Of a stretch of 64,000 nucleotides of DNA, positions 34,834 through 58,108 are shown piece after piece. Both the position numbers and the translations under genes were made by a program. The stretch comes from Lepidodermella squamata (lineage: Eukaryota; Animalia; Gastrotricha): contig JBLDXI010000033.1 of NCBI GenBank assembly GCA_047495785.1, forward strand, positions 2,790,001-2,854,000, written 5' to 3'. The notes beneath the pieces were generated by a model. It worked only from the letters and a program-made list of their open reading frames with translations. It searched no databases and was not told the origin of the DNA. Position 1 is the first letter of the stretch. Every line of letters begins with the position of its first letter.

Positions 34834-37800
34834 CTATCGAAGCTCCAGCTTGGAAGTCGGCACGACTTTGCAACTAGGGCATCTGCAGCAGGTGAAACGG
34901 AAATAAGTTGAACTCAACATGAACATTTGCGTTTTACTCACTTGGCTAAGGTGTCAGCACATGGTTGGCAGTAGCAATGGCCACACGGAATGAAAGCAAT
35001 TCTTTTGTGCCTCGACTTGCATTGGGGACATAGAGACTGAAAATATAAAAGTTCAACGTAAAAAATACAGAGCAGACCATCATTTAAAAATCCATAGCTC
35101 TAATCTGGCGAATTTGTAGAGTGAATATTTCGACCACGGCGCCAAGCTATTCCTGGCGTAAGTGAACTTTTTTCATGACCCGTCTCCGTGGAACATAAAT
35201 TACTCCACATCTAGCTTTTTTCGTATACATTTCTTTGTACTATACAGTTTTTAGCCGATTTAAATAGCCGACTAGCAATAAAATCGTCCTATCAATTGAA
35301 TCGAAAGTCGTAGTTGACCCAAATGGTGAATATATTCGCTAACTCATTGCATAACCAAGTTTGAAAATATGATTTTTTTCATGAGCTAGAATGTAGAAAG
35401 CGGATAAATAGCACTAACGTCTTCCTGCGACTCCAGCAGCTTCTGATGTGCTCGATCTCGTTCTTCGATTATGCTGGCGACGGCGATAGACGACTGGTCA
35501 GAGCCATTTCGCTGGTGGCCTTGTCGCATCGAAGTAACGCTTTCCTTCCGCTTATTCGCCGTCAATTCACTGCGATTGGCGAAAAAAATTGCCGGCGACA
35601 TTGGTGGCCTATCAATGAATGGGCTTGAAGGCGTGGGCGGCGGGAGCATCATAGTGTTAGCTTCTGGATTTTGCACCAAGTCACAAATTGACCTAACCAA
35701 AGATGTGTTACAACGACCAATTGAATCCTAATAAAAATTATATTACAAGCGAGGCAAGCCATGAGTTGACGAGTAGTAGCCCGGCGTCGGAGGCGGCACG
35801 TTGTCACTCTGCTTGAACAAGCGGGATGGATCGCCGATCGTCAACGTTGACGCTTGAGACACAGCGGAATTGCGCCTGTTTAGTTCCGCGTGGCTGCTAC
35901 TGGCAGTAGATGGGCGACTCGGTCGCCGGTCAATAGCGGAGCTAACTGACAGTTTTGACTCGCGAGTTGGCGTTGCTGCTGGAGGAGACGGCACGGGCGG
36001 CGGCGTTATCGGCGCCTGATGGCTCACAGACGTTTTACGGACTGAGTGGCGCCGCTTTCCCTCAGTGCCGGCCTCGACGGCTGTCGACGGCGTTCGTGAT
36101 AGAGTTCTATCACTGCTAGTATCAGCAGATTCTGCGTTGGTAACGGACCTGTACAAAGAGAGAGTCAGACCCGAAAGCTGTAAATTAAAGAAAAGCTAGC
36201 GAACTGTCTCTTGGGAACATCGCGGCCTTGCCCGCTGGTAGAAAGTGGGCGCGAAGAGGAACCGTGCCGCTGAGCACTAGAAAAATAAATTAAAGTCAAT
36301 AATGAAGTTTTCGTTTATAGCCTGCAAGGTAACATTCCCAGTAGATTTTGGTAAACAGGCAACTAACCTGCGGCTCTGCCGGGCTCTCTGCTGCAGGATT
36401 TCGGTAAATGTCGGGTCTAGGCAGTAGTCAAGCGGCGTCTTGCCGCGCCTGTCTCGAAGCGATAGAGTCGCTCCGGCTTCTACTAGCCAAAGAGCAATGT
36501 AAGCGCAATCACGCAATGCACCTTGGGCAGCTTTTTCGACAGCGCGTGCTGCACTCTCATCCTCGGTTTCGATGTGTTCGCTGGTACTGCGCGATGCTTC
36601 GTTGCGGATCGAGCCGCGTCGGGTCTTGTGCGCCTCGGTATAAGCTGCCAAAACCTTGTGAAGCACTGTGCTTCCTCCTGCGTCGGCCAAATCCGGAACG
36701 ATGCAGCGAGACGGATCCGTTGGACAGTTTTTCAGAAACACCTATACATTTCAAACCATCAGCAAAGGTTGTTTTATGCTGAGAACAATGTTAGGTAACT
36801 GATATACCATGGCAACTTTGAATTTTCGTTCCTCAACGGCCAGCATTAGCGGCGTAGAAGCTGTCTGCGCCGTCTGCACGTTAATTTTTGCACCAGCCTT
36901 CAGCAACATTTCGGCAATGTCGTCATGACCATTTGCCATCCTTTTTAAGAAATTGTTTTGACTTCTTTTTTTCAATCAAATCAAAATTTACGCCAAGTGC
37001 AAAGCGGTGAAGCCATCTTGTTTGGGCTCATCAATCACCCACCGCCGGTTGCCCTGCAGAGTGACCGGTAAATTTGAGGTGGTCGGTGAGCTACTGACAG
37101 GGGCTCCGTTATCGCTAGACACCGAGGTCGAGCCACAAGTTCGCATCACATGGTTCCCGCGTAGAAGATGCGTCAGCAGCAACTCAACACCCCTGTTCAT
37201 ACACGATAGCTTATTAAATGAGAAATTTACATAATTTTGGAACAAAAAACACTTGAGGAAAATTCAGTTTACTTCCAGCGCGACCTACTTTTGCTCCCAA
37301 CAACTTCCGTACGGTATTATATCTCCTTCTGTGATTCCTTCTATACGGTTTATTTTTTGGCTCAAGCATCCTTAGCAATTAAATGGCCGGCTATCGCGTC
37401 GAGAACGCAACGAAAGACAAAGCAGTCATTGTAACGCGATCCGTCTTCGTAGCAAACGGCGATCGGCGGCGCGCGCGTCCCATTAAGCCCGCAACGGCAG
37501 CAGTGGCGGCAGCTGCCCGATCCGTCACGGCCAGCTAGCTCTAGCAGAGGCACAGGCATATCCAGGGCGTGTCCATCCATTATCACTGCACGCGAGTGAA
37601 GCTTCGTAATTAGGCGCCGTCTTAGTGACGGCCAGGTACGCTGCTAAACAAGCCCGAACAAAGACACGAGTGTTTGCGCTCGGCGGCGCTGGCATTCGGC
37701 GCACGTCAGCAGCGTTGTTTGCCGCACGCCGGCCAATAGGCGCGCCGATGACTTTCCGCCCCGAAAAACCAGCGCGACGCTCTCGAGGCCAGGCGGTCGG

Positions 37801-40800
37801 CGACGGCGCAGCCAGGTAAAATAACGCCACAATGCGGCGCACAGCTCATGTTTTTATGCGCCGGCCTCAAGCACCGCCGCGCTGTCATCCCTCGTGTTTT
37901 TGGCCCGGAAGCTCCGCCATTATCTCTTATTCTAGCTGCGCTGCACTGTCATTCGAGACAGGGTCTTGCGCTCTTCATAGCTCAGCAACGTAGCACCGCC
38001 CGTCGACTCGTCTGATATCAGTTTTCGCCGGCTATGGCCTTTTAATCGAGGCGGATCGGAGCTTCACCGCGCATTCGACGTACGTTTCTTTTCGGTAGAT
38101 GAGCTGCTACGCTGCACTTCTCGCGCGAATTATGCGCTCGATCAGCCGCCCGATAGTTACTTTTCGATCGGCAGCTGAGATGCACAACCGAGAGTTATTT
38201 CTCATCACCTAGTCAGGCTAATGGCTGTAAACGCCAGTGGGTTAGCGAGGTTTGCACGGCGAACTCCCAATATTATCGCCATTATTTATATATACAAGTA
38301 AGACTCCTGGTCGACGGTAACATTAGCCGTGATTCGACTGCAGTCGAAGAATAACAATAAATTACCGGCACCTCGTCGTAAATGAACGCCAATCTCATCA
38401 TCGCCGGGCTGCTCTCGGCTGGCGAAATCCAGTCGGCTGCTGGGGCTTTCGCGCTTATCTCCTGGTTTGAACTGGTAGCTCAATGGGCAAACTTATTTTT
38501 ATCATTCGGCGCTGCAGTTGTGGCCGGCGCAGATCTCTGCGCGCTCGCAGCCTGCGCTGGGGCCACGGCAAGATTATATTACCGGCGCTTTCGACGGCGT
38601 AGCCATCAACGGCACAGCTGCAGCCAGGCGGCAGCGGCGATGAGCGCGATACGCGGGCGCGCACACAGATGATGAACAGGCGTGGTTGGGAGGGTAGAGC
38701 GCGTATCGCTGATTGATGATCGGCAGTAGCGCGCACACGGTAGTGTTTACGCGGAAGGATAATTCCAAACATACCTCCGGCGCATCAACACTCGCGATTA
38801 CCGAGCAAGCGCATCGGCCGATCGCGCACGCTCTCTCATCGACAGACGCCATCGCTGCGCAATAAATAACATGCGAGGCCGCTAGCAGGCCCCGAATTCA
38901 CCCAGCCCATCATTCGGCCGTTTTCCTGCCTGATAGCAACTGCCATTTTCTGTTGTAGCTAGAGTAACATCTTCGACTTAGTCGCCCGAAATGCGGGAGG
39001 CAACGCAAGCGCGTCTGGTAATAGCCAGTCTTCTGTCTAAAGCGACACCGCAGAAATTTTGTTCGCAAAATTAGGCGGCTCGACGTGAAAGGTGAGTGTC
39101 CGGCCTGGCTGAAAACGCGCATGCAGCTAATTAAGCAATTGTAGCTCGCGAAGGCTTGAGAGCGAATCGACTCGCGAGCCACAGCGAAGATTGCGCACAT
39201 GCCACGCGCGCTGCAAGCGCGTCTCGGCGACGAAGGGCGCCGCGCTGAGGCGCAGTGTCGCGCGCTGTCGCTACTGAAATTACTAAAATTGCATTGCTTC
39301 GTCGATGGCCTTCGTCGATGGTAATGACGTGTGTCGGCTGCGCGCACGGCCGAATCCGCCGCGCCACTAATGAAGCGGCGGCGTCAAATCATCTCGTGGC
39401 CATCGAGCCTGTCTTGTTTTGCGCGCGCCGTCGAGCGCCGCTGCGCCTGCACCGCCATATGGCCGCCGACAACTACGCTGTCGTCTAGTGGCTCGATGCT
39501 AATAATACAAATATCATCATGAAATCGCAACTAAGTAACTAAAATGATAACGCAAGTACAAGACGTCGCATCTCGCATCGGCTAGTCGGCAAGCGGATAG
39601 CCGCGATCGCCCAAGCGATCACGATAACGCAATAACCCAGCGACACCGCTGGCGCCGGCTGCCGATCGCCGATCGCTGCGTAATTGACGCATTTACACGC
39701 GCGCACGGTCACCCGCAAGCGAGCGCCCAATCCAGGTCCAGTCGACACCCCGAGCATTCTAGTCGCCTCGTTTTCGTTCGGCTACCGATGGTAAGCGCGG
39801 CCGAACTTCTGGTCATGTAGTCCCTGCCGCTTCTGCGCACCTGGCCAGGCGTACGGCGAAACTAATTACGCTGCTAGCTTTTGTGTCCCGATGCGACGCC
39901 GGCATCAACACAACATAATAACGGCAGCAATACATCCTGCTGCCTGTTTTGCGGTCACGGGCAGGCCTTGCACGCCGCAGCCTTTATGAGCGCGTTAACG
40001 AACGCTTAGGCACTTCCTTCCGGCTACTTGATAAAAATAATTACGGCTACAATAAGCGCCGAGATGCGACACTCTGCCCAGCAACAAGATTCGGAAGTCA
40101 AACTAATAGGAAAGTTGCGCTCGCGCCTTTCGAAGCCTGCCGACTTGGTGCTGAACCGCGGCGGAAGCGCGCACTCGCCGCGCCGGCCCACCGCCAGCCA
40201 CTTGTTTTTCGCCGGCGAAGAGGGCCGCGGCATGGTACCGCCAATTTGTTGTTGTTTTCTCGTCTCAATTTACGCACAATAACGAAATTAAAGCAGCCTT
40301 TCTTACGTGTACAACATTCAACCAACATTTTCCCAATTAAGCCTCACGCATGTCCGATCCGCTTTACAATCCGTCCGGGACTTGCTGCGACTGCTGTTTA
40401 CGAGGCCATATATCAACGAATTGCGGCATTTGCCGATTTAGGCCTCAGGTAAGTCCAAATTACTTTCAACACATTCGCCTTTTTGCCGACTTTAAAGCTA
40501 GCACCGATTCATGGAAGCAAAGATGTGGCCGTCGAATCCTCCATACTTCTTTATTGGCCGTGCTTAAGTTAAACATCGCGGCTCGTCGCTCTCGTGGCGG
40601 GGCCCGATTAACCCGCATGGAATGTAAAGAAGTATGTAGCTTTTCGGCCACAATGTCAGCAACAAACATCTTTCCAGGCGCCAGCCATCACATTTTTTTA
40701 TCACTACATTTTCTATTCGCGCAAAAAGTTCATGACAGCATGCTAAAGCTTATTTGTCGCATGTTTAAACTGCCAAGTTTCTTTCTAATTAGCAGCCGCG

Positions 40801-43669
40801 GCTACTGTTGTGAGACAAGTTTTACTAAATAAAGTCCAATTAGCGTGGAATAAGAAGTTGTTCATAAAGCATAAAGTGGATCCAGATGTTGACTACGTGT
40901 AAAAGCCATCCGCTTTCTGCGGTACTTTGACCAAGTTCTAGCTGTTAATCGTACAGATGGCCTCGCTGGTGGCTCAGTAAAATTATTGATAAATTATATG
41001 TGTGTACACCGAAAGTCGCCGGGCGAAGCGCCAAAGTGGCGCCGGGCGGCCGAACAGCGCAGTAACGACAACGCGGGCGCGAAGTGTCGCATCGTCGTGT
41101 GGCTTGCAGTACCAGAGATGCGACGTGCGCGCTGCGCCTCGAGAGCAACAATTAGGCGGCGAGTGGCGCCGGGCCTAACGACGCCCAGAGCACTCGTTAC
41201 GATTGCATTATCTGTGCCATTACAGAGCCGCCGCCTGCCGACTGCGACAAATTCCATCAGGCTCATGAGTCGTCATCATGGCTCATCGAACGAAGGGCAT
41301 GGCCGTAATAAAATGTAGAATACGCGCGCCTACAAGTTTGCGACGGCGACACAGGCGCACGATGTTCTTAGTTTATCATCGGCTATTTCCGCGCTGGCAT
41401 GTCCATCTGGCGCATCGCCATGCTATGGTGACTGGCTTATGAAATTATGCATGGCCGCTGCCTGAAATTATACGTAGCCAGTTGTAATAACAGCGTGTAT
41501 CCTCTTTCGCCGTCGCCGTCAAATTGCGAACTGCGACTTGCCAGTGCGCGCCAGCCACTGGCTTAATAGTCGCGCTAAGCTAAGCCTAATAACACACGCG
41601 GCCGAGTTGCTGCCCATCGACTACTGAATTATCGCCAGTCTCCCGACAATAAAACGAAGATGGCGACGAATAGAACACAACTGTACTGCTGCTGCTGCTG
41701 ATGATGATGAGCCAGTCAGCCAGGCGCCGGCTTTATTGCCGGCCATTTCCAGCGAGCAATCAGCGGCGTCATTTTCGACTTGTCACTGCGATGTTTTTGT
41801 TTGCTATTTTTGTCATCCATGTTCAGCGCAGCGCGAGCGAGCGCCTTGAACCGCCCGCCGTTCGCCGCAGTCCACCATGCCGATTCCAAGCTACCATCAA
41901 CACACCAATAAGTATGCTGGCTGCCTTCGCGATTGTTGTCGTAGCGTGCGCAGTGCAGCGGCGCGTACAGCGCTTGAAAGTTGATTATTCGAATCGCGGC
42001 TGATTGGCATTATCGCATTTGCTGATAGCTGAGTAATTTCGTTACTGGACATCATTATCGTTGTCGACAGCTATCGAGATAAGGCGATAAAATTATGCCG
42101 CCGAGTGGCTCATCATCGTCGTCGTCCAACTTGGCGAGCACTCATCAGCGTCATTGTCACTCCTTCAATTACTCCTCTATTTATTTTTATAGCTCTTATT
42201 TCATCTTATTTCCAGCCTTCGGCGCGTCACTGGCCGCCAGCAAAACAACACCCAGTAACGTATAAGAAGCTGCGCCCGATCGCCGCCAGTCGCCAGTCGC
42301 CGATTCTTGCGCGCCTAAATATTATCGCGTTCATGTTTTCATTCGAGCAAGTCGGAGCCGAGGCGCGCTTTAGCAAGCTATTCGCAACGATCGAAAGGCT
42401 AGGAACCAGCCAAGATGCAGCAGGTAACGCGTCTTTGCGAATAATGTGAATGTATGTTTCATCGCGTGGCAGTTGCCGGCTTTCGTTGGTTCAGGCGGAC
42501 CAAAACGGAGGGAAGGCGATCGCCGCCAGAGGCAGCGCCATAACGCATTTGGTCCCCTTCAACCGACTATAGCCACCTGCGAATCGACTTGGTGTCGTTC
42601 GTGTTTCATGTACGTATTTGTGTCGTCCATTAATTTTAAATGACTGAATTTCGTATTCTAATCTATCGATATTCCTATTATGCTTTCCCACTTCACAGTG
42701 CTAATTAGGAAGCGTTGAATTATAGCCTAGAACTCACGTTGCGTAGCCGTATTTCGAAGCGTAATGTAGGGCGTTGAATCCGTTATTGTTGACGATAGTC
42801 ACGCTGTATATTGTTTTGCAAATAGTCAATCAATGATACTTGTCCGAATCAGTTATACTTACCTACTATCGCCATTTTCCAAAAGCGCGCTAGTGATGAA
42901 GTCAGATTTTTTCATTATTGCCAAATGAAGCGGCGTGTTTCCTTCGCGATCCTATGAGCCAAATTAACCTTGAAATTATCAGGACATCGGGTAATTTTTA
43001 AACCTGGTAGCAAGTCATCGCGCCGCGTTTCAGCAAAAACTCAACAGTTTCTTTACAGCCCTCGGCAACGGCAATATGCAACGGCGTTTGCATGTTGCGG
43101 TTTCTCGAATTTATCTTCGCACCACCCGCCAGCAAAATCGGTACCAATCGATGCCAGTTTCCTTTGCAAGCCAGCTGTCATGGTAACAAATAAACAAATC
43201 TAAATCGTTCAAGGTCAGTTTCCAAATGCAATGACTCACATGTAAAGGCTCGTTGCCATCGTTGTTTTGAACTTCACAACTTGCTCCTATGTTTTGGTTG
43301 AAAAATAAAATTTGTTGGGATATCTCATAACCTGGATTTTGGTGTACCTTTATGAATCAGAAGCTCAGCGCACTGAACGTTTCCCCGCAAGATAGCCGCG
43401 TGTAAAGCAGTGATGCCAGTCGAAGATTGTGCGTTGATCTGAAGTTGTGACACCGATGCGTTGAAATATCGTTAAAAAACCGCGGAGTTGCAACTTACGT
43501 CAATGATGAATCGGCTACTTGACATCATGTCAACAATTTTATCGATAAGACCGAGAGCTGCGGCTTTGACGAATTGATCCTGATCGGATAGTTTAACTGG
43601 ATCAAAGCCAAAACCAAAAACTCTGTTATTTTCGCTATCGCTCTCCGAAGCAACGGTTTCGGATGTCAT
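34834..43669 (-). CDS. MIB1: Mind bomb-like E3 ubiquitin ligase: ankyrin repeats, coiled coil and one C-terminal RING; N-terminal MZM/REP domains not found
   Basis: Spliced exons give QTPLHIAV, DREGNTPLHLAI, VTIVNNNGFNALHYA, WVIDEPKQDGFTALHLA and CPQCKSRHKRIAFIPCGHCYCQPCADTLAKCPSC...LELR*, collinear with MIB1. There is a 5545-nt intron at 37193-42737. The start codon is inferred. Confidence 0.85.
40524..40652 (+). ncRNA. mir-1: microRNA miR-1 hairpin (mature 3p at 40618-40639)
   Basis: TGGAATGTAAAGAAGTATGTAG is the conserved miR-1 mature sequence. The complementary 5p arm CATACTTCTTTAT starts at 40542. Basal stem TGTGGCCG/CGGCCACA. Confidence 0.96.
42469..42580 (+). ncRNA. mir-133: microRNA miR-133 hairpin (mature 3p at about 42548-42569)
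   Basis: TTTGGTCCCCTTCAACC(GACTA) matches miR-133 over 17 nt. The 5p arm GTTGGTTCAGGCGGACCAAA (42485-42504) pairs with it. Basal GGCT/AGCC and GCAG/CTGC stems. It lies 1.9 kb downstream of miR-1 on the same strand. Confidence 0.94.
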
Positions 43670-44342
43670 CGTTAATTTAGTTATCGAACTACTTTCAGAT
43701 AATATATATGCTATTCAAATGAGAACTATTTGATGGCGCGTGGTGAATTATTTCAATCGAGACAATTGAGATTCCAACTCCTAGTTTGAATTTCATCGAC
43801 AAGAAGATGTTTTGGTGCAAATATTTATATGCGGCGCGTAGGGATGCGCCCTATAGCAGATAAAAAGAATTAGCTTTAGGCTGCAAGGAACGAAAAGCCG
43901 AAAGCATGTTATAGTGGCTTGGTGACTAGAATGTCGGAATCGGCGTGAGAAACTATATTTTCAAAACAAACAATGCAGTTCAGGTGAGTTGATAATTGCC
44001 GAAACTAGCTTGGTGTTTTTGGGCAACAATAGAGAAAGCAAAAAGCAACAACGAGGCGTAATCGTGAAATAATATCTATAAAGAATAAGTTCACGTTTAT
44101 ACCTAGTAACGGCATGATTAATTTTTAATTTTAATACACCCGCACACCTACTCAGGAGTATAGTTTAATTTCTAAAGCAGTAAAGATATCGTTGCCAGGA
44201 ATAAAGTTCGAGTGTATTGGACCTCTAGGTAAAACCCTGAAAACATTACGCTTAATAATACTAGTATATGTACAAGCAATCGTGGTAATGTTGAGAATGT
44301 GTTAACAATTTACGGTTATGTGTTTTCCAAGCCTTCACACGA

Positions 44343-44999
44343 TTACATCTCTTGGTCTGCTAAACTACCAACTTGTTTTTTGCCAAAAGTATTCACAACA
44401 ACGTAGCGCTCACCTGTTCTGGCTGACACTGACGACAGTGTACAATAGTCACGACGTGTGCGCAGTAGCACGTTGTTCGTAAAATGGCCGTTAGCAAAAG
44501 CTGCATTCGCCACGGCGAAAGTACTACGACGTCGCTCGCCTTCGTCACTGCTTGACGAGCCGGAGCCAGGGATCGACGGTAAAAGTGCATCGACATTGGG
44601 CGGCGTGATGATGGCGTGACTCGGGGGTTCATCCTGGCCAAAGTTAAAAAATAGATACATCTATAAGATACGCAGTGCGGGAGGCCTCGGAATTTGAGCA
44701 TAATGAAATAATTTGCATTCTAGCCGAAGGTAAAACGTTGAAGCAGCGCTTCTCCTAAGCAAATTTCCAATCAATGTAAATAAGTTCTTCTTTACCTTTG
44801 CGAAAACATCGTCGTCATCGTCGTCCTCGCCAGATGATAAGTCGAACAAAGGCTCATCATTAGCCGATGACAGGAGTTTTTCGGCTCGAGTCATCTCAGC
44901 TGGCAAGAACTGGCTTTCGCCGCCATCAGTTTCGATGCACTGCCCGGAAAATGTAGGAAAGGATTTTGCGTCATTCGGAAATATGAAAGACCGAGGCAT
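44343..44999 (-). CDS. Hypothetical 146-aa acidic/Ser-rich protein, three exons
   Basis: Exons 44999-44796, 44633-44414 and 44359-44343 join in frame through GT-AG introns. An in-frame stop lies upstream of the ATG. No recognised domain. Confidence 0.5.
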
Positions 45000-45736
45000 C
45001 TCACGGCTGAGACGTTATGGATTCTAAAAAAAGTAATGTCTGTTCAAAAGCTGCAATTTTCAGATACTCCAGCTCTGCAATGTGTTATCAGCTATGATTT
45101 ATGTGAAGTGCACAAAATTGAAATAACTATCACTATCGATAGAAATTGTGAGACGAATGAAGTACCTTGGTACTTATGGATTTGGAGCACATCCGGGTCT
45201 GGAAAATATGTTTTGGTTACTTTACTCACACTGCACATAGCAATACAATGAAAAAGCAAAAATGCTGCAACGCTTCCCGTGTTATAAAAGAAAAACATAT
45301 TTTCCTCTGCATTGTCTGCTATTTAAAATTTAACGACCGCTCTTTTGCCATGTTACAGGAAACTGGAGAGCAAATTTGCTGGCGGGATAATAAGTGTTGC
45401 TTGAAATACCTGAATGATATTTAATATATTCCCTGGATTCTGGACAAAAAGTCGACTCGAATAGCATTTTCGTATCAACGGCTCACTGTTTGATTCCTGT
45501 CTCTGAGACCAAATTATTCAAAGGTTCTCATTCGCTTCTGAACGAAGAAAAATAAGACATAAAATGTGCCCTTTTCGATCATATCGTCATCGACCCTCAT
45601 CGATCGCAGTGATCGAAGTGATTGCAAATGCGATTTTGCACCCAAGACGTGAATAAATAGTACTAGCAATAATAGGTTAACTCGTTCCATCTAAACGCAA
45701 CAATTTATTAATAAAAGAGTGCACAATTTTGAACAA

Positions 45737-48700
45737 TTATTCATCGCCGTTTGGCGAGACGCTCATTCGTTCGTCTTCATCGTCATTTTCATCATCTTCG
45801 TCGCCATTCGTTTGCTGCTTGGTTGATGCCGACGTGGTAGATTCGAGAAATTTTATCGAATAATTGATGTGATCACACCTGTAAAATGCATTCAGTCTTA
45901 AGGTCACTCATTTAACGAAATTTGAACTCACAATTGTCCGAGAGCTCGAACACGGTTAGAAATCGCTCGTTGAAGGAGAGTCAGAGCAGGTGCGATTTTG
46001 TCAAGTGTGGTGTTCTGAGCGGCCGTTGAGAAGAACCTCGATGCATTGACCAGAAGAATTGAGTCAGCGAACTTGAGGTAGAGCTCGATATGAGCCGAAG
46101 CGTTTTCGCTGTTGTCGATTCTTGAAGCAATAAAGACAACAAAATCGGCAACGAGATTCGATGGCAGTCGGGAAATCAGGAGTGGGATATCAGAAGGCAC
46201 CACGCTTTCAACGGCACGAGACAGCAGCTGCTGGTTTTTCAGCTTTAGACCAATGACAATAGCTCGAGCCAAATCGCCTTCGGACATCATCGACTCAGCC
46301 TTGTCGACAGTCATGTCCACATCGAGGTCGATGGGGTCGAAGGTCATGTCGGCGTTCAACGAGTAAACAAGAAGGCCTTCGCTTGTGGCCGCAACGAAAT
46401 TGTCTCCACCTGGGTTGAAGTCCAAGCTCCAAACTCGAATCTAAAAATAACGAATTGTTCAAATTCATGAGAATCATCATTTTATCGCTCAGCATGGAAA
46501 TCAATTCTAGAGTGAATTTTTATCTCAATTATCAAAATAAGGTTGCTTACGGCGTGCTTTTGCTTCCGAAGGGACAAATCGTGTTTTACGGCACCAGGCA
46601 GTCTAATCTTTTCCTCGTCGTCTTCGTAGTCATCGCGTGGGTCGATGTAGCCGAAATCAGTCATATTTTTCCTGCTAAGCAGCTCTTGATTGGCATCAAG
46701 CGACAAATTCATGCTGATCTGCATGCGTCGAAGCAGCACTTCTTCGCCCGGCACTTTCACGCTGTAGATGCAGAGAAAACGCGACAAGCCTGCCGCTAAC
46801 AAGTAGTCGCCGTCAGGGCTGTACCGCAGCGTTGAGAAGTACTGGCCACCAGCTTGAGCGCGATGCTTCGCTGTGATCACGTCTTCGATTTGCCGGCCAC
46901 TGCCCACGTCATGTTTCGCCTCAATTGTACTCATATGCCTGCCGCTTTCCGTCTCCACTATCGCAATTTGACAATCGAGCGTTGCAGCAGCGACGTACAT
47001 GCCGTCAGGCCGAGTGGCCACGGTCAAAACATCTGACGACAGCCTGATAGAATCGCGAGTTCCACCGCCGTCGTCGGAAGCGTTTGCGCCACCTACAGCC
47101 CACATTCGAATGGTTGCATCCCAACTGCTCGAGACCAAGGTACCGGCCCGGGGTGTCGGCAGGAAGACGACGCCGGAAATTGGTGCTTCGTGGCCGGCGA
47201 AAGTGTCAAGCAGCTGACCGGTCGACACTGACCATAAAAACACTTCGAAAGCGTCAGCCGCCCCAGCCGCGACCAATTCGCCACTGTCATCGACTGCGAC
47301 GCAAGTCAACTGAGTCGATTTGGGCGTTGCGAAGGTTCGAAAGTTTCGGTAACGAGTCGTGTCGAAGGCGCGAACAGTTCCGTCGAGGGAAGCTGAGATA
47401 ACGGCCTTCCCAGATTGGGTCCAGGCAAGGCCGACGATGCCTGCTGAATGTTCGCCAAACGTCACGTACGAGTGGCCACTCGCCAAATCCCACAGCTTGA
47501 TTTTGGCATCATTGCCGCCAGATGCTAAATGGCGACCGTCAGGTGAAATTGCGACGGCCGATGTAGCGTGGAAGTGGCCTTGTTGCTTCAGCACAAACAT
47601 TTCAGACCGCCATTCCCAAACGGCAATTTGTCCGAGCTCTTTCGAAGCAATCGCCAACCACTCGCCAGTGGCATTGAAGCGAACGGACGAGATTGGATGG
47701 TCCGTAACATTTAGCGAATGTATGATAGTGAAAGTGGGCATTTCGTGAATGAACAGCGAACCATCCGAAAATCCCGAGCACAAAACCCGGGTTGGCGCGT
47801 GGTAAGCTGACGTTCGCAGTTGAGCGCCGCGATCAACGAATATCCCAGAATCGTCGCGAGATTTCTGCGTAGGTACAGCAGCATCTTCGCCTTCTTTTTT
47901 TATCTCTCGATTAGCCTGGTTGGCATGTAATGCGCTTTTATACGAATAGCGAGCTTTCCGGTTATAGACCAGGGCTTTTATGATATGACCATTTTTCGTC
48001 TCAATTTCCTGAAAATAGAAAGTAATCGTATAAATTCAGCCTGTGAAAATAATATAACCAAGTCCTGTGTGAATAAAATTTAATTTCCATGCAAACTAAC
48101 CCGGTCCTCGGGATCCTTCTCCCAAATGAACACTTGGCTATTTGCAGTGACTACAATAACGTTAAGGTGGCTCTCATCGCCACTCTCGAATTTGCCATTA
48201 CGGTGATCTCGCTCAAAAAACACTGCAACGACAGCGCCTGAAGCGCCTCCGAGTGAACAAGTTCTAACGTTCTTGCGCGACCAGCTTAAATTAGCGAGCC
48301 GGAATTGCGAAGTTTGCTCATCTTCGACTGCTTTGACATCCGAGGAATCTGTCACATCGCAACTGTAAACACGACTAGTGCCGTCGCGACTGCCAGCAAC
48401 GACAGCCTGCGAGTCACAAGACCAGCTTAGGCTCATGATATCATCGTAAGCACCGTGTAAGATGCGAACGGCATGGAAAGGATTGACGTCTTTGACACAA
48501 TTGGGCGAGCAATAAATTATCAATGTCGTTCCCTTTGCCACGGCCACTAGTTTCCCATCCGGGCTCCATTGAATGTCATTGATCGGTGCGTTCAAATGGT
48601 AAGTACGAAGCAGCGATCGCGAAATCATGCTTATCGACAACAAATCATTGTCTAAAATACTTGAATTACTCAAGAAATCAGCGGGTTATCAAGGTATACT

Positions 48701-49043
48701 CACTGTCGTTAGCTGCCATCGCTAAATGGCCATTTGGTGAGAAAGCGATCCTCGTTATATTAAATGAAGTTTGAAAAGGTAACGTCCTCGACGTGTTTCT
48801 GCAAGGAAATATCGGAATTAACGAGTAAATTCACACACAAAATTCGCCGACTGACTTTTTCAACTGAAATACTGTGACGCAGTTTCCGGCCGGGCTGACA
48901 AGCGAATCCCCATCAGGTGTGAAATCAACATTGCCATTGCGATAAGGGCATCCGAGCAAATTCGAAAACTATGATTACAGCAAAATTTCGTTATTACAGC
49001 AATTAAATTTTGGTTGCTTTTTTACCTGATATGAAAATCTCAT
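45737..49043 (-). CDS. PWP2: Periodic tryptophan protein 2 (UTP1), WD40 SSU processome component
   Basis: N-terminus MRFSYQFSNLLG; LGQIAVWEWRSEMFVLKQQGH, SASLDGTVRAFDTTRYRNFRTF, FDPIDLDVD and HIELYLK. TAA at 45737-45739. Confidence 0.96.
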
Positions 49044-49240
49044 CTGCAATTATGTGCTTCCTCAATAAAATAAGTTTGATCGTGTTACCGAAATCTAAAA
49101 CAATCAAAATTACCAAGTTTACCAAGTAACAAAATTCAGTGGTTTGTTTATTAGCAAATAAGGATATTTTGTATTTATATATGATCAACGCCTAAAAACA
49201 AGTTGACTCACAGCCATTGACAAATTTTACAAAGTTACGC

Positions 49241-51329
49241 CTAATCGTCATCTTCCTCTACTGGCTCCTTTTTCGCCTTTTTCTTCTTCTTTTTCTCCGA
49301 GACGGGTACTTCCTGTTGCTCCTCTTCGGCTTCTTCAGCCGGCGGGGGTTTACGTTTCGAGGCGATGGGGGTCATAGCTTCTTCCTTCGGTTCCTTTTTG
49401 GTCTTTTTCGAAGGAGGGAGCGATTGAGGTTGCTGAGGGCCAGTTGCTTCTTCATCCTCGTCGAAACCTTCCGATTCCAACTTATGCTTCTTCGTAGGCT
49501 CAGACTTGGTCAATTTCCAGTCTTGCTTACCCGAGTACTCGCCTTGGCCGGGTGTGCCCTTGGGAGCGAACTTGTCAAATGCGGCGCGCTGTTTGCCAGT
49601 GCCGCTGATTTTTCGAACAGTTCCTGATTCGAGTGACTTGAGACGATTTTCGAGCTTTGCACGATGTTCAATGCCTAGCACGCTGCCGCAGTCTTCACCC
49701 AGTGCATCGACACGAACGGCAAGAGAAGCCTTTGCGGCCAACATACGAGAGATTTTACCTTCAACCATAAAAAAGTGATTCATTGGCTGATGATTTGTAA
49801 GCTACATACCTTTGAGGCGAGGTTGCGACTGACCAACAAGAGACGCATGATAGATAAGACCGTATTTGGGCGTATCATGCTTGGTTTTGAGGGCACGAAA
49901 CAGCGCCTTCTCCGCGCCGAGAATCTGCACTGTAGACGAAGGGTGCTTCGCCAAATTGACCAACGATCCAGCCTTAGCAATAAGGCGGGCACCGACCAGT
50001 TCGCCGACAAGAACAGTCAAGTTTGGAGCGACAGCCATCATTCGATTCTTGATATATTCGTATAACTGTTGACGGCACTCTGTGACATCAATAACCTATA
50101 CGCAGAATATTTAATAATTTTAAATTCTGCTGATTCAATACATACCTGATCACACAAATATCGAATGTTTTCAATATCTTCCTCTGAAACTTCAGTTCCC
50201 ATGGACACTTCAGCAGCGGCCTTGACTTGCTCTTCGACTTCCGTTGGCATGATTTTTGACAAATCCGTAGTATGGGTATTTGTGCGATCACCTGCAAAAT
50301 ATGTCAAATTTAATTAATGAGATCAATACTGAACTTGAAAGCACATTAAGATCTCGCATAAATCAGCGGTAGTGACGAAAGTTATATTATCAGTTAACAT
50401 CAAAAACAACTTATATACATCATATTTCAAATCAAATCAATAAAATTGATGACCAACTAACCAATCAAGTTGACGGCTTTCGCATAGGCCAAATGATCGG
50501 GAACAAGTTTACTCAACTCAGGAAAGTGCCAACCGTACCACTCACGAGCACGCATTATATAGTTATTTAGTTCTTTATCCAAATCGTCCAACAGGCCTAA
50601 TGAAACAATAATTGCAATGACGGACAGGAAACTTTAGAAAATATTACAAATGGCTTGGATTATCATCGTATCAATTTTATCCGGGCTGAATTTGAGCTTG
50701 TAACGAGACAAACTGTGAGCGAGACCGAGAGACATCGCTGCCAACTGACGATCAGAAAACCCGCCTTCTTTTCCAATTTCACCCGCAAGAAGGCTGTTCA
50801 CGTGAGTGCGAATCGAACGCATCAATTCTTGCACCGCGGAGTTGGCAATACAGCTGATGTTGTATTTCTCCTTGATTATGTTGCCCAATTTGACATCAGC
50901 CACCGCGAGTTGCTCATTGCCTTCTTCTCCAATTTTCTTCAAGATTTTTTTCAAGGGCTTACTTAGCTTTCCCTCAACCAAAGCAGTTGTAGCTGAAATT
51001 CAAAGTTAACTGTTATCATGACAAACTAATAAAGAAATTATGTACCAGCTAATGCATCCGTCATGTCATGGAAAGCTTTAAATTCTGTGAGCTGCAATCT
51101 GAAAAATGCCGACATCGCATGTCAAATATTTTCATCAGAAAATAGCAATATACATTTTTGCAGCTTTATCAGGTGAATCCAACTCTTGGCACAGGTTCTC
51201 AACTTGCTCTAGTTTTTTCTCATCCAAGAGCTATGAAAAAACATGGATATTTTCATACAAACGAGGAAAATATATCTAGCTGACCTTGAAGACAGCAAAA
51301 CCTGCTGCAGTCTCAAACAGCACCAGCAT
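49241..51329 (-). CDS. NOP58: Nucleolar protein 58 (box C/D snoRNP core)
   Basis: [81 protein letters not shown] and a K/E-rich tail. Confidence 0.96.
50360..50427 (-). ncRNA. SNORD70: Intronic box C/D snoRNA, SNORD70-type (18S rRNA 2'-O-methylation guide)
   Basis: Lies in the only long (about 170 nt) NOP58 coding intron. Minus strand: box C ATGATGT (50423-50417), guide TTTCGTCACTACC, box D CTGA (50366-50363). The guide is complementary to conserved 18S GGUAGUGACGAAA. Confidence 0.9.
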
Positions 51330-51829
51330 TGTTATAATGACACCTACAACGAAAATAGCAGCGTTGACAATAGTTATGTGGAGATGATAACAAAGACTGA
51401 TGTTTCCAGGAGAAATATCCTTTCGGCAAGCATTGTATTAAGAGTATAGCGAGTTCCCGAGATTTTGCTAAATGCTAAATGGGCCCCGAAATGATACGAT
51501 GAATTTGACGCATCCTTGGAATGGCCAAGATCAAGGACACAGACAATAATTGATTCTCTACAGTGATAGTGTGTAGTAGCGATTTCAAGGATGTTTTTGT
51601 GGAATATTTTCCGATGATCCGCTAAAACAAGGCGACTAGCAAGGCCCAAAGCCATAGCATTGCGGCAAAAAGTAAATTAGCGATTTACAACAATTTTCCG
51701 CCTGGTTTGAAGATATAAGTTCGACGTAAAACGTAATGCTGAAGACAGACCAAAAAGGTCAAAGGATACGTCAAGGCACATAAAACCCACCGCGAGCGTC
51801 GGCACACCTAAAGCAGACGAAGCTATGCG

Positions 51830-51890
51830 ACCACGTGTTACGAGCGAGCAGCGCGACGTGAGAGAGACGAGCTATATTCAAACACGTGGT
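51830..51890. promoter_or_regulatory. Paired E-boxes (AACACGTGGT, inverted) upstream of NOP58
   Basis: ACCACGTGTT at 51830-51839 and AACACGTGGT at 51881-51890 flank a minus-strand pyrimidine stretch, about 500 nt upstream of the NOP58 ATG. Confidence 0.55.
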
Positions 51891-52957
51891 TAAAATCTAA
51901 TGTGAACGCTAATATTATAAAATGTAAAATGTAAAAGAAACAAGAATTTTTTATCTATATTGATTAATTTTTGTTATTTGAATTTACGCGGGAAATTTTT
52001 GTTCATTTATGAACGGAAAAAGACGATTCACTGTAAGAAAAATAATGCATCAGGGGACCCATGAGCGAACGATCAAAAAATAATGCGTTATAACAGGCAT
52101 TTTAATGCATTATTTTTGCTTTCGAACAATGAAATTTTCAACCTTTGACCCCTGGAATATAATTTAAAATAAAAAAACTTTCGCTAATGCGTTATTTTTC
52201 TAAGAGTGTTCTAGTGGGCGCGTTGGTCCCACCTTCATCTGGGCGTTGACCCAAGTACTCTACCCTTGACCCTTGGCCCTTGCCCCTAGGCATAGGAATA
52301 AGAGCGACTCGCCTTTCATCAGGTTGTGTGCAAAACCGCCTTTTACGTCTAGACTGGCAAAAAGCAGTGTCGGAGACAGCCATCCTCCGTACTGATAAGT
52401 TGACGCCTCTTTAGTAAGATTCTTTGTCCTTCGTCTACCTGCCTCGACCCAAGCGCTATTGGCCATGCGCCTATTTACTTTTCAACTACACTATACCGAG
52501 GGTTGGCCACTTAACGTTTTACCCAATGTCATTGTCTAAGAATTTCGAGACGCACACGCTCACGTCATCGCCTTTTACAACCGACAACAGCTCGGCGACG
52601 TTGGCTCACTGATATTGCTGATATCTCAGATTTAGTGATTATCCGTGACTCCGTTAGCGACCGCAACTTATGGTGAGAGTTTATTGCTTGGCATCGAATG
52701 CCTCCCTCACCACGGATGTAAACGCGTTATCATTATTGCAACAGAATTCCTTGTTATCGTATACCGCTCACTGTGACTCAATACAATGTAGATGTTACCT
52801 ATTTCAAGCCGCAAGGGCATGTGTTGGAAATTAGCTATCGAAGTCTATTGCTAAATTAATGTTCTCGATAGTTATTATGCAGTAAGTCTTCTATTATTCG
52901 GCTTAATTTCGAATTATACGATTTAGGAGACATTTCCAGTAATTCTTTAGCTCGCAA

Positions 52958-53464
52958 AAAGCTACCAATCCGCACAGAATAAGGCAATTAGGACTCTACT
53001 TAACAAACCGTACTCGTTCGATGCCACCGCTCTCCTCAAACAGCTAGGTTGGCTACCAATCTATGGGAAACGCCAAATTCACGAAATGACCCTAGTTTGG
53101 AAATGTTTGCACTCGCAAGCACCCGACTTGATCAAAAACTTGATCAACAAACCCTCGCCCGATCACAAAACTAGGCTTAGCAGCTCTGATGGCGTTGAAA
53201 TCCCTCGACAAGCTTACCATCTCAGCTTTCGATTTCGTGCTGCTAGCAAGTGGAATGATTTACCGCCATCGATTAGGTCTTCCGAAAACCCGAAGATCCT
53301 CAGAGACCAACTTCTGAAAGTACTGCTGAAAGCAGAATACGTGGACGATTTCCTTTACACAAAGAAGAGGTAACTCGCCACCTTACCTCAACGCGCCCAT
53401 CTGCGTCCGTTGGATGGAAGACCGCCTTAGTGCGAATTCAACGCTATTATACATACATACATAC
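52958..53464 (+). mobile_element. 5'-truncated L2/CR1-group LINE fragment (ORF2 C-terminus, 3' UTR, short-repeat tail)
   Basis: Reads QNKAIR...LLKQLGWLPI...VWKCLHSQAP...TR...SFRFRAASKWNDLPPSIR, typical of L2/CR1/Crack ORF2 ends. Stop at 53373, then an (ATAC)4 tail at 53449-53464. Confidence 0.8.
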
Positions 53465-53577
53465 CTATTCCTTAGGCGCGTGGCCCGTCACCTAATTTGA
53501 GGTGAAATGCAATCTCAAGATTACTGCTTTGGTCAAATTAATCCATAACCTGCATTGCATAAAACTAATACAGCTTA

Positions 53578-53749
53578 CAGGGTGGCCAAAAAATTCCGCG
53601 GAAGGCGAATTCGATGCGCATCAATTTGATGAGTTTTAAGAAGTTGAAGAATTTCAAGCATTGTGTTGTCAATGGAACTCCTCAATTTCTTGAAACTTTT
53701 CATTAAAATACGCATCGAATTCGCCTTCTGCGGAATTGTTTGGCCACTG
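53578..53749. mobile_element. Palindromic Tc1/mariner-type MITE (172 bp) with TA target duplication
   Basis: TA|CAGGGTGGCCAAAAAATTCCGCGGAAGGCGAATTCGATGCG ... CGCATCGAATTCGCCTTCTGCGGAATTGTTTGGCCACTG|TA; imperfect pairing continues towards the centre. Confidence 0.85.
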
Positions 53750-54120
53750 TAGAGGATAATGATCGAGTTTCAACCATAATCGTTTATTAAACTTAATCTC
53801 GACAGTTTTCCAATAACTAGCCCAAAAGTTAGAACATTCGATGTGAATTTCATTGCTCAATCACCTATTCACAGAGAATATGAACTAAATTGCAGAATGA
53901 TCTATACCTAAATATCATGTTTTCATTCTGAACTTCTCCGTTTCTCAAGTTCTAGGAAGTTCAAGTTTCTAGAATAATGCGGTAGATATCCGAGAATTTC
54001 CCAGTATTCCTTATTCTGAAGACTTTGGAGTAATTTCCACAGCGATTGTTATTTAATCTTTAATCATCTCCGCTTAAAAATTGAGATGTGTTTGTTACAT
54101 GTATTATCTAGAAGTTAATA

Positions 54121-55746
54121 ATGTACGCAGAGGACGATCACGTTGCAGTTGGAGACCACAGCACGGTCACTGCTGGCACCATTGATATTGGCGGGATCAA
54201 GCATCAAACTCGTGTAATCAGGATTGTACCTCATCAAAGTATGCCCTAACCTCTGAGACTTAAATTTAAACCACTTGATGTTTACTATCAAGAATCGGAT
54301 GGAGTTCATGACGTCTCCAACGAAGACTTGCAGGTTACGGAAGATAGCCTCGGAGTTTTGGAAACAACTGTCACCGATACCAGTAATACTTTGAATAACC
54401 AGCAGATGTCTTATTAATTTTGATTATGTCACAGTGGCCACAGGCGGACCCAACACTTCGAATTATTTTGGTGTATCGATGCAAGGCGATCATGTTAGTC
54501 TTTTAAAATAATGAACTTCTGGCTTACTGTAGTTCTCAACAGGCAATTGCCAGCCATTATCAAGATTTTGACGAATTGAACCCCAACTCGCAATGCTTGA
54601 TATGCGGTGATCGCGCATCCGGTGTTCATTACGGCTGTCTGTCTTGCGAAGGTATGGTGTGATGAGCTGCAATTACGTTGGTGTTAACATTGGTAACTTT
54701 CCACTATAACAGGCTGTAAAGGTTTCTTCAAGCGCACAGTACAAAAAAATCTGACCTATAGCTGCAGAGACCAAGGGGCTTGTGTAATAACAAAATACAC
54801 CCGAAATTCTTGTCAGTTTTGTCGTTATCACAAATGTTTGGAGTTCGGTATGCGTCGCGAGGCCATTAGCGAAGAGTTTCACGATGAAGCTGAGCAAGCT
54901 CGACGCAGAAGCAAGTTTCGTTATGACGAGCATTTGCTGCAGCCTCCTGCTATCAACGAACCGGAAGTTGTGGGGGCGCCAGAAGAGCATGGGTTAACTC
55001 TGGAAGACCAAGACGAAATGCTAGAAAACATATTACAATCTGAGGCGGACTCCATGCCTGCCGGCGATCCAAATTTCTCTCTTGCCAAAGTCACTGATCA
55101 GGATATAGCTCAATCGCAGCTTCGCGAATATTGCTTCCAAGACTTACGTCTTGCTATTGATTGGAGTAAGCGACTACACGCTTTTCAGGAGTTGTCATCG
55201 GAGGATCAATTGCAACTAATACAGGCGTCCTTTTTACCACTATGCTGCCTGCGATTAGCATTCAGATCGCTGAAATTGAACCCGTCTACGGCACCGGGTG
55301 GAATTGACCCTGGTACCCCTATTCGTCTGCTGCTTACAAGTAATTGCATCGTGAATCCGGATCAAGTGTTGGAGACTTCAGGTTTCGCCAAGGCTGTCGT
55401 TGACACTGCAGCCTCGTTTGTTCGATACTTTCCGTACGTGCAAATGGCAACTGCAGAGTTCGCTTGCCTTTGTGCTGTTGTTTTGTTCGCATCTGATGCG
55501 AGTAAGCTCGAAGATGTCGAGCAAATTCAGGACAACCAAATTCGAGCGGCGTCGGCATTACGAAAATGCTGCATTCGCCGTCATGGCTCCGACCCGCCCC
55601 GAGCCGGTCGTTTTCTGTTGCGCTTACCTAGCCTTCGCTTGTTGAGTCTAAATGCAGCTGCAGCTAACCCGGAGCTCTCAGATCCGGTGGCTCGCAATCA
55701 ACTCGACCAGTTTATCTCGCAAAATCTCTTCGACACCATTGTTTAA
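54121..55746 (+). CDS. Nuclear receptor, NR2 group, divergent RXR-like
   Basis: [46 protein letters not shown]...[12 protein letters not shown] and T-box [13 protein letters not shown] motifs [17 protein letters not shown] and FLLRLPSLR. Five exons. Confidence 0.88.
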
Positions 55747-55953
55747 CTAGGTTTTCATTACTACGTCCTATCATTGTTCTTTTTCGGCCATATCTTTGGC
55801 AATTTTTAGCTGTAAGTGTCATTAACTCATTTATCATTATTCCGCGTCATTTTCTCGGATTTTTGACGCCGTCATTTTGACTTCAATAAAGCCGCAAGGT
55901 GTTTGTAATTGTGTTCTAATATTCTATTTCTGATTTATTTAGTTTTTGTTTAA

Positions 55954-58108
55954 ATGGCAGTTGCTGCTTCTGCAGATGTACAGAAGCACTCGGTACACAC
56001 ATTGGTGTTTCGATCGCTAAAGCGAACGCATGATTTATTCGTCTCCAACTACGAGCTGCCTCTAGCTCGTGATGATGCTGCAGACCGAGCTTTGCGTCTT
56101 GCGAAGCGCAGCAGCGAATACGCCCTCGTGGCTGGGCTGGAGCCCGAGCGTGAGGACCAAAATCAGAACAAGGCCAATGGCGCAGATGGGGGCAAAAGCC
56201 TTGTTCCGCTTGTTCCACGACCTCTTGGGGCTAAATTGATGCCAATCAATGTCCCAACTTCGTCTGGATCTGGTGCTAAAGGTGCCATGGGAGGTAAGAA
56301 ACTCGTTCGCCTTATACTTCGCCGACCGGAGATTCTTCTTGATAAGTTTTGACCAAGTCATTGATTTTTTCAAGGTTCCAAAGCTCTACTTGCTGCTGGT
56401 AGCGGCAACACGTTCACTGACGGGCGAGGTCGGCAACAGCAGGCGCTAGTACTTCATGCGCCGCAAATGCCGAAGCCTCGCTGGCATCCGCCCTGGAAGC
56501 TCTATCGTGTCATATCTGGCCACACCGGCTGGGTCAGGTGCCTGGCAGTTGAACCAGGAAATCAGTGGTTTGCGTCCGGTGCCGGCGACCGTGTCATTAA
56601 AATCTGGGACTTGGCTTCGGCAACTTTGAAACTGTCTCTAACCGGGCATGTCAGTGTGGTTCGCGGCCTGGCGATATCGCCTCGCCACCCTTACCTGTTT
56701 TCGGCCGGTGAAGACAAGCAGGTCAAGTGCTGGGATCTCGAAGTTAACAAGGTTTGCATTTACGGAGTTATTTTGCGTGAATTATTTTGAAGTTCGAAGA
56801 TTTTTTCCCATCAACCGAAAATGTCTACGCATATGTAACCGACTTCTTGAACTACCTGAATTTATGCAAAAGTTAGACTGGGTCAGAATATACTTAGATT
56901 AGCCCCGATTCCCAGTCCCCTATATACTCTATTTAAATGAAGAACACTTCGCGCAATTAGCATGGATAACGGAAAGCGAACCCAACCATTGTTTGTAGCG
57001 ATTGTTGCCCAGAAAGCGCTGGTTCGCGTCGAGTTCCCTAGCTGCCCTATCTAATCAGGTTCAGATTGAATCAACTTGCACGCAAAAAGCTATCTGCTGG
57101 GGTTGAGCCTGCTTTCATCACGTATTTTAAATCGTGTTAGGTTGACCCATTTTTATGGTTTACTGATGACATTTTCTCTCGTGTTGTATGGGAGAAGTCT
57201 CACCGTTCAAACTGAATTGTTGCCCACGTCTTCAATTTTTCTTTTTATTGATCTATCTCGAGAATCTATCTAGAGAAAAATTCAGACATATCGGATGTCT
57301 GTTATTGCTTGACCCGCAATTTGCTCTCTATCCGAAAACTAGAGAAACCTTGGCCGGTTCATCTATACTCCTCATGATCCATCATTGTTATTTTATTCAG
57401 GTTGTGCGCCACTATCACGGTCATCTCAGTGCAGTACATACTATTGATATCCATCCGACTGTGGACGTGCTGGTGACTGGTGGGCGTGATTCTACAGCCA
57501 GGTTGTGGGACATGCGTACCAAGGCACAGATCCACGCCCTAACCGGCCACTCGAACACCGTGGCTTCGGTGAAATGCCAAGCCACCGAACCGCAGATCAT
57601 GACCGGAAGCCACGACTCGACCATCCGATTGTGGGACATAGTCGCTGGGCGCACTCGTGTAACGCTCACCAACCACAAGAAATCAGTTCGAGCACTCGCA
57701 ATCCACCCAACGGTTAACATGTTCGCCTCCGCGTCAGCCGACAACGTGAAAGAGTGGAAGCTGCCAGACGGCGTCTTTATCCAGAATCTATCTGGCCACT
57801 CGGCTATTTTGAACGCGCTGGCGTGCAATGCTGACGACGTTCTGGTGTCGGCTGCAGACAACGGCTCGATGTTCATGTGGGATTGGAAGTCGGGCTACAA
57901 CTTCCAGCGTCTGCAGAGCGCTCCACAGCCCGGCTCAATCGACTCGGAAAACGGCATCTTCGCTCTTACGTTCGACCAATCCGGCTCGCGTCTGTTCACT
58001 GCTGAGGCCGACAAGACCATCAAGGTATATCGCGAGGACAACGAAGCGACCGAAGAGTCACATCCGGTCAACTGGAAGCCCGGAATCGTTAAAAAAGCGA
58101 AATATTAG
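55954..58108 (+). CDS. PLRG1: Pleiotropic regulator 1 (Prp46), WD40 NTC spliceosome component
   Basis: [46 protein letters not shown] repeats and [12 protein letters not shown]...HPVNWKP. Introns at 56294-56373 and 56752-57400. Confidence 0.97.

Follow-up and report, generated by a model that had tools for sequence, protein, structure and literature searches.

miR-1 and miR-133 hairpins lie antisense in the large intron of a shortened Mind bomb-like gene of Lepidodermella squamata

Introduction

The location of miR-1 and miR-133 antisense in intron 12 of MIB1 was described in 2008 for insects and vertebrates (PMC2500172). Among the insects, honey bee and flour beetle carry the pair nested in MIB1 intron 12, and the silkworm locus is rearranged (PMC2500172). 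The mouse pair is likewise found in MIB1 intron 12 (PMC12214129), and for fish the synteny of the pair with MIB1 has been described (PMC4177693). In five flatworms both microRNAs are located near Mind bomb genes, at a distance of more than 10 kb from each other (PMC4405270). Among known microRNA-host microsyntenies, that of miR-1/miR-133 and Mind bomb ranks with the oldest.

Here, we report on a stretch of 64,000 nucleotides from the gastrotrich Lepidodermella squamata (assembly GCA_047495785.1, contig JBLDXI010000033.1, positions 2,790,001 to 2,854,000 of the forward strand), which we refer to as the window and whose positions are used throughout. Hairpins of both families are present, and we consider it likely that they represent the conserved bilaterian miR-1/miR-133 muscle cluster and that they occupy, in antisense, the ancestral "intron 12" of a MIB1-derived gene. 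The microsynteny itself is already published (PMC2500172, PMC4405270), and the window adds another lineage to it. The gain is thus incremental, the basic arrangement being known at textbook level; what is new here is that conservation of the exact intron codon and phase is demonstrated, and that the nest is retained in a compact genome with a shortened host and with long loops in both microRNA families.

Results

Two microRNA hairpins on the plus strand

The search for microRNA families and the folding of the matching regions yielded the following features:

40532-40646, plus strand: pre-mir-1 hairpin, 115 nt, from the RF00103 match and the fold
40539-40560, plus strand: miR-1 5p (star) arm, the partners of the mature strand in the MFE fold
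40618-40639, plus strand: mature miR-1-3p, a single exact match, 18 of 22 bases paired to 40539-40560
42477-42575, plus strand: pre-mir-133 hairpin, 99 nt, from the RF00446 match and the fold
42549-42570, plus strand: mature miR-133-3p, three mismatches to the canonical sequence, no such match expected by chance

Rfam was scanned by E-value over positions 36000-44000, and mir-1 (RF00103) was found with 39.6 bits (E=1.5e-5) and mir-133 (RF00446) with 32.6 bits (E=2.5e-4), both on the plus strand; the minus-strand scores at the same places were lower (27.7 and 23.7 bits, respectively). Each hairpin aligned to its model end to end, with a 43-nt insertion in the terminal loop. The MFE was -47.7 kcal/mol for pre-mir-1 (z=-6.0) and -42.6 kcal/mol for pre-mir-133 (z=-4.0), and for neither of them did any of 200 shuffled sequences fold as well.

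The mature sequences are well preserved in both families. The 22-mer TGGAATGTAAAGAAGTATGTAG is found in a single copy, at 40618-40639, against an expectation of none from 100 shuffles, and this mature miR-1 is identical to the canonical one in 21 of 22 nucleotides; the 3p arm carries the family sequence UGGAAUGUAAAGAAGUAUG... at this position. The 3p arm of mir-133 carries UUGGUCCCCUUCAACC..., as the family does. Nucleotides 1-16 of miR-133-3p are canonical and all three mismatches fall within the last six nucleotides, so that the 3' end reads CGACUAU (canonical CAGCUGU). A literature search with this variant sequence gave no match. In the fold 17 of the 22 mature bases are paired, and the changed CGAC (canonical CAGC) pairs with GUUG of the 5p arm. 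Since this GUUG matches the altered 3' end of miR-133, the stem has been upheld by a compensatory change, which indicates selection on the hairpin.

Both hairpins are genuine muscle-type microRNA hairpins. They form a cluster, with miR-1 upstream and the mature sequences 1.93 kb apart, well within the 10 kb used to define a mir-1/mir-133 cluster. The initial annotation had placed them on the plus strand in the order miR-1 then miR-133 and 1.9 kb apart, and the Rfam and mature-sequence matches agree on all of this.

Scores, loops and the question of decay

For comparison, public metagenome contigs were scanned with a miR-1 19-mer, which returned 120 loci; no close relative of the window was among them. 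Two of the loci, L073 and L003, contain Mind bomb exons.

A default Rfam scan of the window, which applies the gathering threshold, reported neither hairpin, because both score below that threshold (39.6 against 45.6 bits for mir-1, 32.6 against 55.5 bits for mir-133). It might be argued from these scores, from the two 43-nt loop insertions and from the diverged 3' end of miR-133 that processing has ceased and that the hairpins are degenerating remnants or resemble microRNAs by chance. A score below the threshold is, however, not a sign of decay, since the conventional arthropod-type mir-1 of L003 (41.9 bits) and the long-looped mir-1 of L073 (43.8 bits) also fall short of 45.6 bits; the canonical mir-133 of L073 has 30.8 bits, with the gathering score at 55.5. 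In L073 a mir-1 with an equally long loop (60-nt insert) lies beside a canonical mir-133. In addition, the mature sequences and seeds of the window are intact, with no matches expected by chance, the folds are strong, and the change in the mir-133 stem is compensatory. Loss of function or chance resemblance is therefore, in our view, highly improbable.

The length of the loop was assessed as the distance between the 5p motif and the mature strand in the 42 metagenome mir-1 hairpins with a locatable 5p arm. Of these, 38 had a distance of 24-31 nt, compared with 64 nt for the mir-1 of the window and 78 nt for that of L073. The long apical loops of these two hairpins fold as GC-rich stems. A long mir-1 loop is thus not restricted to the source organism, and the 60-nt structured insertion of the L073 pre-mir-1 is the second such case.

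The metagenome loci also showed variation in the layout of the cluster. In a JGI metagenome animal (L073:9922-10194 and L088:5832-6104) a MIB1 intron carries mir-1 and mir-133 antisense, with only 142 nt between the mature sequences. Two tandem mir-1 hairpins, 122 nt apart on one strand, were seen in L038 (538-751) and L079, and in L038 and L011 a mir-133 core is located on the strand opposite mir-1, which points to another cluster layout in some (arthropod-type) genomes.

The host gene and its large intron

The gene on the minus strand was modelled by joining minus-strand exons at GT-AG sites from 43669 to 34834, which gave 720 uninterrupted codons:

34834-43669, minus strand: host gene, 13 exons, 720 aa, spliced model
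42738-42803, minus strand: host exon 6, first helix of the split ankyrin repeat, ending in ...NNNGFNALHYASKYGYA
37193-42737, minus strand: host intron 6, 5,545 nt, GT-AG, phase 2, with both hairpins antisense inside
36992-37192, minus strand: host exon 7, second helix GVELLLTHL, a low-complexity insert, then RRWVIDEPKQDGFTALHLA
34834-35036, minus strand: host exons 12-13, encoding the sole RING finger

The predicted protein consists of ankyrin repeats, an S/T/P-rich linker, a short coiled-coil-like stretch and one C-terminal RING. In the Pfam search, ankyrin repeats and a zf-C3HC4_3 RING, split over the last two exons, were found. All introns of the model are GT-AG. Apart from intron 6 they are short, with 51, 52, 54, 59, 59, 60, 61, 65, 66, 219 and 382 nt. 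A minus-strand gene with 37193-42737 as its only multi-kb intron had been proposed earlier, and the 13-exon GT-AG model reproduces the coordinates and phase 2 of this intron exactly and shows it (5,545 nt) as the only one of that size next to 11 others of 51-382 nt.

Intron 6 enters after ...NNNGFNALHYASKYGYA plus AC, and exon 7 opens with G followed by GVELLLTHL, which places the intron within one ankyrin repeat. After the second helix of ankyrin repeat 6 and before the RRWVIDE motif, exon 7 also encodes an insert of about 35 aa, rich in Ser, Thr and Pro; this low-complexity insert is absent from the L003 MIB1 and from the MIB1 ankyrin domain structure 8v0e.

The two halves of the host could be separate genes, because reading through the exon 6 donor leads to an immediate stop (ACG TGA) and an in-frame ATG lies three codons before the exon 7 acceptor. 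MIB1 would then have been broken at the intron into an ankyrin-only gene (...YGYAT-stop) and an ankyrin-RING gene, the latter starting at MNRGVELLL or at a trans-spliced acceptor, and the microRNA cluster would be intergenic. The size of the intron, a 100-fold outlier, would fit with such a fission. However, the break would run through a single ankyrin repeat and separate its helix 1 (exon 6) from its helix 2 (exon 7). The donor is a consensus GTGAGT and the acceptor a CAG, the phases on both sides match (2/2), and the alignment with MIB1 is gap-free over the exon 6/7 junction. No AATAAA is present within 550 nt after exon 6, although the true 3' end of the gene is also without one. Since the break would lie within an ankyrin repeat, at a junction that is phase-compatible and gap-free relative to MIB1, we regard fission as quite unlikely and treat the 13 exons as one gene.

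The intron position is shared with MIB1

Both metagenome loci with Mind bomb exons allowed a comparison of intron positions. In L073, canonical MIB1 exons lie on the plus strand; the exon ...LRGNP ends CCA AG|GTTTGT in phase 2, within a Ser or Arg codon, and downstream of it the minus strand carries mir-133 (9922-9996) and mir-1 (10066-10194). In L003, the S|AMRVLL exon (phase 2) of a three-RING MIB1 opens at the acceptor TTTTCAG|C GCA ATG CGC, and mir-1 (5794-5872, minus strand) is located antisense, 2.1 kb upstream of it.

The YGYA-T-GVELLL sequence of the window aligns residue for residue with RGNP-S-AMRVLL. The split codons are YGYA + AC|GT...AG|G in the window, RGNP + AG|GT in L073 and AG|C + AMRVLL in L003, all in phase 2. 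Because the residues match in this way, the microRNA-bearing intron is placed in the same codon and the same phase at three loci. The order is given as mir-133 nearest the donor and mir-1 nearest the acceptor for the window, L073 and L003, of which L073 carries both microRNAs antisense and L003 mir-1. The position of the microRNA intron is homologous to that in the MIB1 of L073 and L003.

Two more introns are shared, both in phase 0. The host CYQ|DREGN corresponds to SLQ|DAEGD of L073, and SQED|SLCPQC, two codons before the first RING Cys, corresponds to IKEQ|TMCPVC of L003; this is intron 11 of the host, in the same place as in MIB1 RING3. In total, 3 of the 12 host introns coincide with MIB1 introns of L073 or L003, with about 0.04 coincidences expected by chance (12 introns, about 2,160 sites, about seven comparable positions). 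Since three positions and phases match where about 0.04 are expected, the host is probably MIB1-derived and the intron ancestral. Its presumed identity with human and mouse "intron 12" is taken from the literature (PMC2500172, PMC12214129).

Identity of the host and loss of domains

The ankyrin exons point in the same direction. Compared with all PDB sequences, 8v0e was the top match for exons 7 and 9, and exons 6, 7 and 9 are collinear with residues 180-199, 210-230 and 336-381 of its chain. The host RING is nearest to RING3 of the L003 MIB1 (E=4e-8, compared with 0.01 for RING1 and 0.41 for RING2), and a similar QKL...Q stretch precedes the RING in both.

The host is, on the other hand, far from canonical. 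Three RINGs characterise MIB1 and the host has one. Exons 10-11 are S/T/P-rich (a linker of about 230 aa) and contain only one Cys; RING1 and RING2 are therefore missing. At its N-terminus the model opens with a Met directly ahead of ankyrin repeat 1 (DQFVKAAALG...), and neither the MIB/HERC2-ZZ-MIB/HERC2 module nor the REP repeats are encoded in the 2 kb upstream, up to PWP2; the ORFs in these 2 kb match no Pfam family. Between the Mind bomb-like gene and PWP2, two adjacent ORF segments in the same frame (44346-45014, minus strand) encode an acidic, Ser-rich protein without a Pfam family. The initial annotation had stated that much of the host protein was lost, and this holds at the locus 34834-43669, where the N-terminal half and RING1 and RING2 are gone.

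It might also be possible that the host is MIB2 or another ankyrin-RING ligase and that the nesting is coincidental or secondary. The identity to MIB1 segments is only 27-39%, the MIB/HERC2, ZZ and REP parts and two RINGs are missing, an exhaustive protein search with exon 9 returned generic multi-ankyrin proteins only and no MIB, and a search of the protein atlas returned generic ankyrin clusters only. The PDB also has no MIB2 ankyrin domain to compare with. Nevertheless, MIB1 is the best PDB match for two exons, its RING3 is the closest RING, the three shared introns are hardly explained by chance, and in the literature the microRNA nest is a character of MIB1. A different ligase as host thus seems very unlikely. 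Shared introns, collinear ankyrin exons and the likeness to RING3 together support a host that is MIB1-derived, if non-canonical.

Content and surroundings of the intron

The large intron differs in composition from its surroundings, with a GC content of 0.50-0.61 (per 500 nt) compared with 0.39-0.45 in the flanking exons and neighbouring genes. The CpG observed/expected ratio is above 1 (1.1-1.5) in the intron and in the rest of the region, which suggests a genome without CpG methylation. No repeat is common to the intron and the remainder of the window, and neither a repeat nor a transposon explains the size of the intron. A transposase ORF of the window has no match on record. Further Rfam matches in the intron were not better than E=2.

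A motif scan of the intron detected no CArG box and only one MEF2-like site, with E-boxes at background density; TATA and poly(A) signals did not exceed background either. With CArG boxes missing and neither MEF2 sites nor E-boxes enriched, the scan points to no promoter for the presumed primary transcript.

Contigs of a related animal from ENA metagenomes (L121-L127) are syntenic with positions 46687-58108 of the window in the order PWP2-NOP58-nuclear receptor-PLRG1, and the coding parts share 66-72% of their DNA sequence. In these contigs PLRG1 (469 aa) and PWP2 (812 aa) are each encoded by one intronless ORF, whereas introns interrupt both genes in the window. The contigs contain no MIB gene or microRNA within 10 kb upstream of PWP2, while the window has both there; thus, the local gene order is not fixed in the lineage. 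The PLRG1 ORF of the window shares 84% identity with a protein from an ENA metagenome and 66-75% with those of animals of many phyla. The PWP2 of the related metagenome animal has about 38% identity to all named bilaterians compared.

Discussion

The initial annotation had proposed that an ancient microsynteny survived here despite genome compaction and loss of much of the host. This proposal is supported by the MIB1 loci of the metagenomes, in which the intron occupies the same codon and phase and the microRNAs have the same orientation and order.

The following picture of the locus would be consistent with these results. The cluster would have its own promoter within the intron, from which a plus-strand primary transcript would run through mir-1 and then through mir-133, 1.9 kb downstream, presumably in muscle. 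Drosha would crop both hairpins, and Dicer would remove the long structured apical parts to release miR-1-3p and miR-133-3p with canonical seeds. In the host gene, transcribed from the minus strand, splicing would remove the 5.5-kb intron that interrupts an ankyrin repeat midway.

The intron is about 100 times as long as its typical neighbours. The simplest cause of this would be the room needed for an independent transcription unit and its control DNA, and it is reasonable to infer that the microRNAs account for the size of the intron. The two hairpins also add two examples to the conserved microRNAs that tolerate very long structured apical loops, which bears on the substrate rules of Drosha and Dicer.

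A further possibility, which we consider unlikely, is that selection acts on the antisense nesting itself, for instance by way of transcriptional interference or of chromatin shared by the muscle microRNA unit and Mind bomb. Under such selection, the host remnant (ankyrin repeats and last RING) and the exact splice junction would have been kept after the half that binds the Notch ligand was lost; the microRNA cluster would then preserve the host gene, and not the reverse. Preserved to the exact codon and phase, in a strongly compacted genome and in a host that has lost most of its canonical domains, the nest offers a natural test case for constraints that a nested non-coding gene may place on the size of an intron and on the retention of its host gene.

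Compared with the vertebrate MIR1-2/MIR133A1 cluster of mouse, human and fish, the locus agrees in the antisense orientation, in the order miR-1 then miR-133, in the spacing of a few kb and in the location in an intron of the MIB1 ankyrin region (PMC12214129, PMC4177693, PMC2500172). It differs from it in several respects: the host is without the N-terminal half that binds the Notch ligand and without RING1 and RING2, the loops exceed those of the Rfam models by about 43 nt, the intron is an extreme outlier in a compact genome, and MEF2/SRF sites are not recognisable.

The nesting in MIB1 intron 12 of insects is the same, and in the arthropod-type locus L003 mir-1 lies antisense upstream of the S|AMRVLL acceptor, again in phase 2. 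In contrast to the window, L003 has a canonical MIB1 with three RINGs and a mir-1 hairpin of normal size.

Flatworms show that the two microRNAs are linked to Mind bomb genes in a spiralian lineage (PMC4405270). However, their microRNAs are separated by other genes and by more than 10 kb, and each neighbours a different Mind bomb paralogue, whereas in the window they are 1.9 kb apart in one intron.

The JGI metagenome animal (L073/L088) shares with the window the corresponding exon (RGNP + AG|GT), the location of mir-133 and mir-1 antisense downstream of it, and the long structured loop of mir-1. It differs in that the mature sequences are separated by only 142 nt and that both mir-133 and the MIB1 sequence are canonical.
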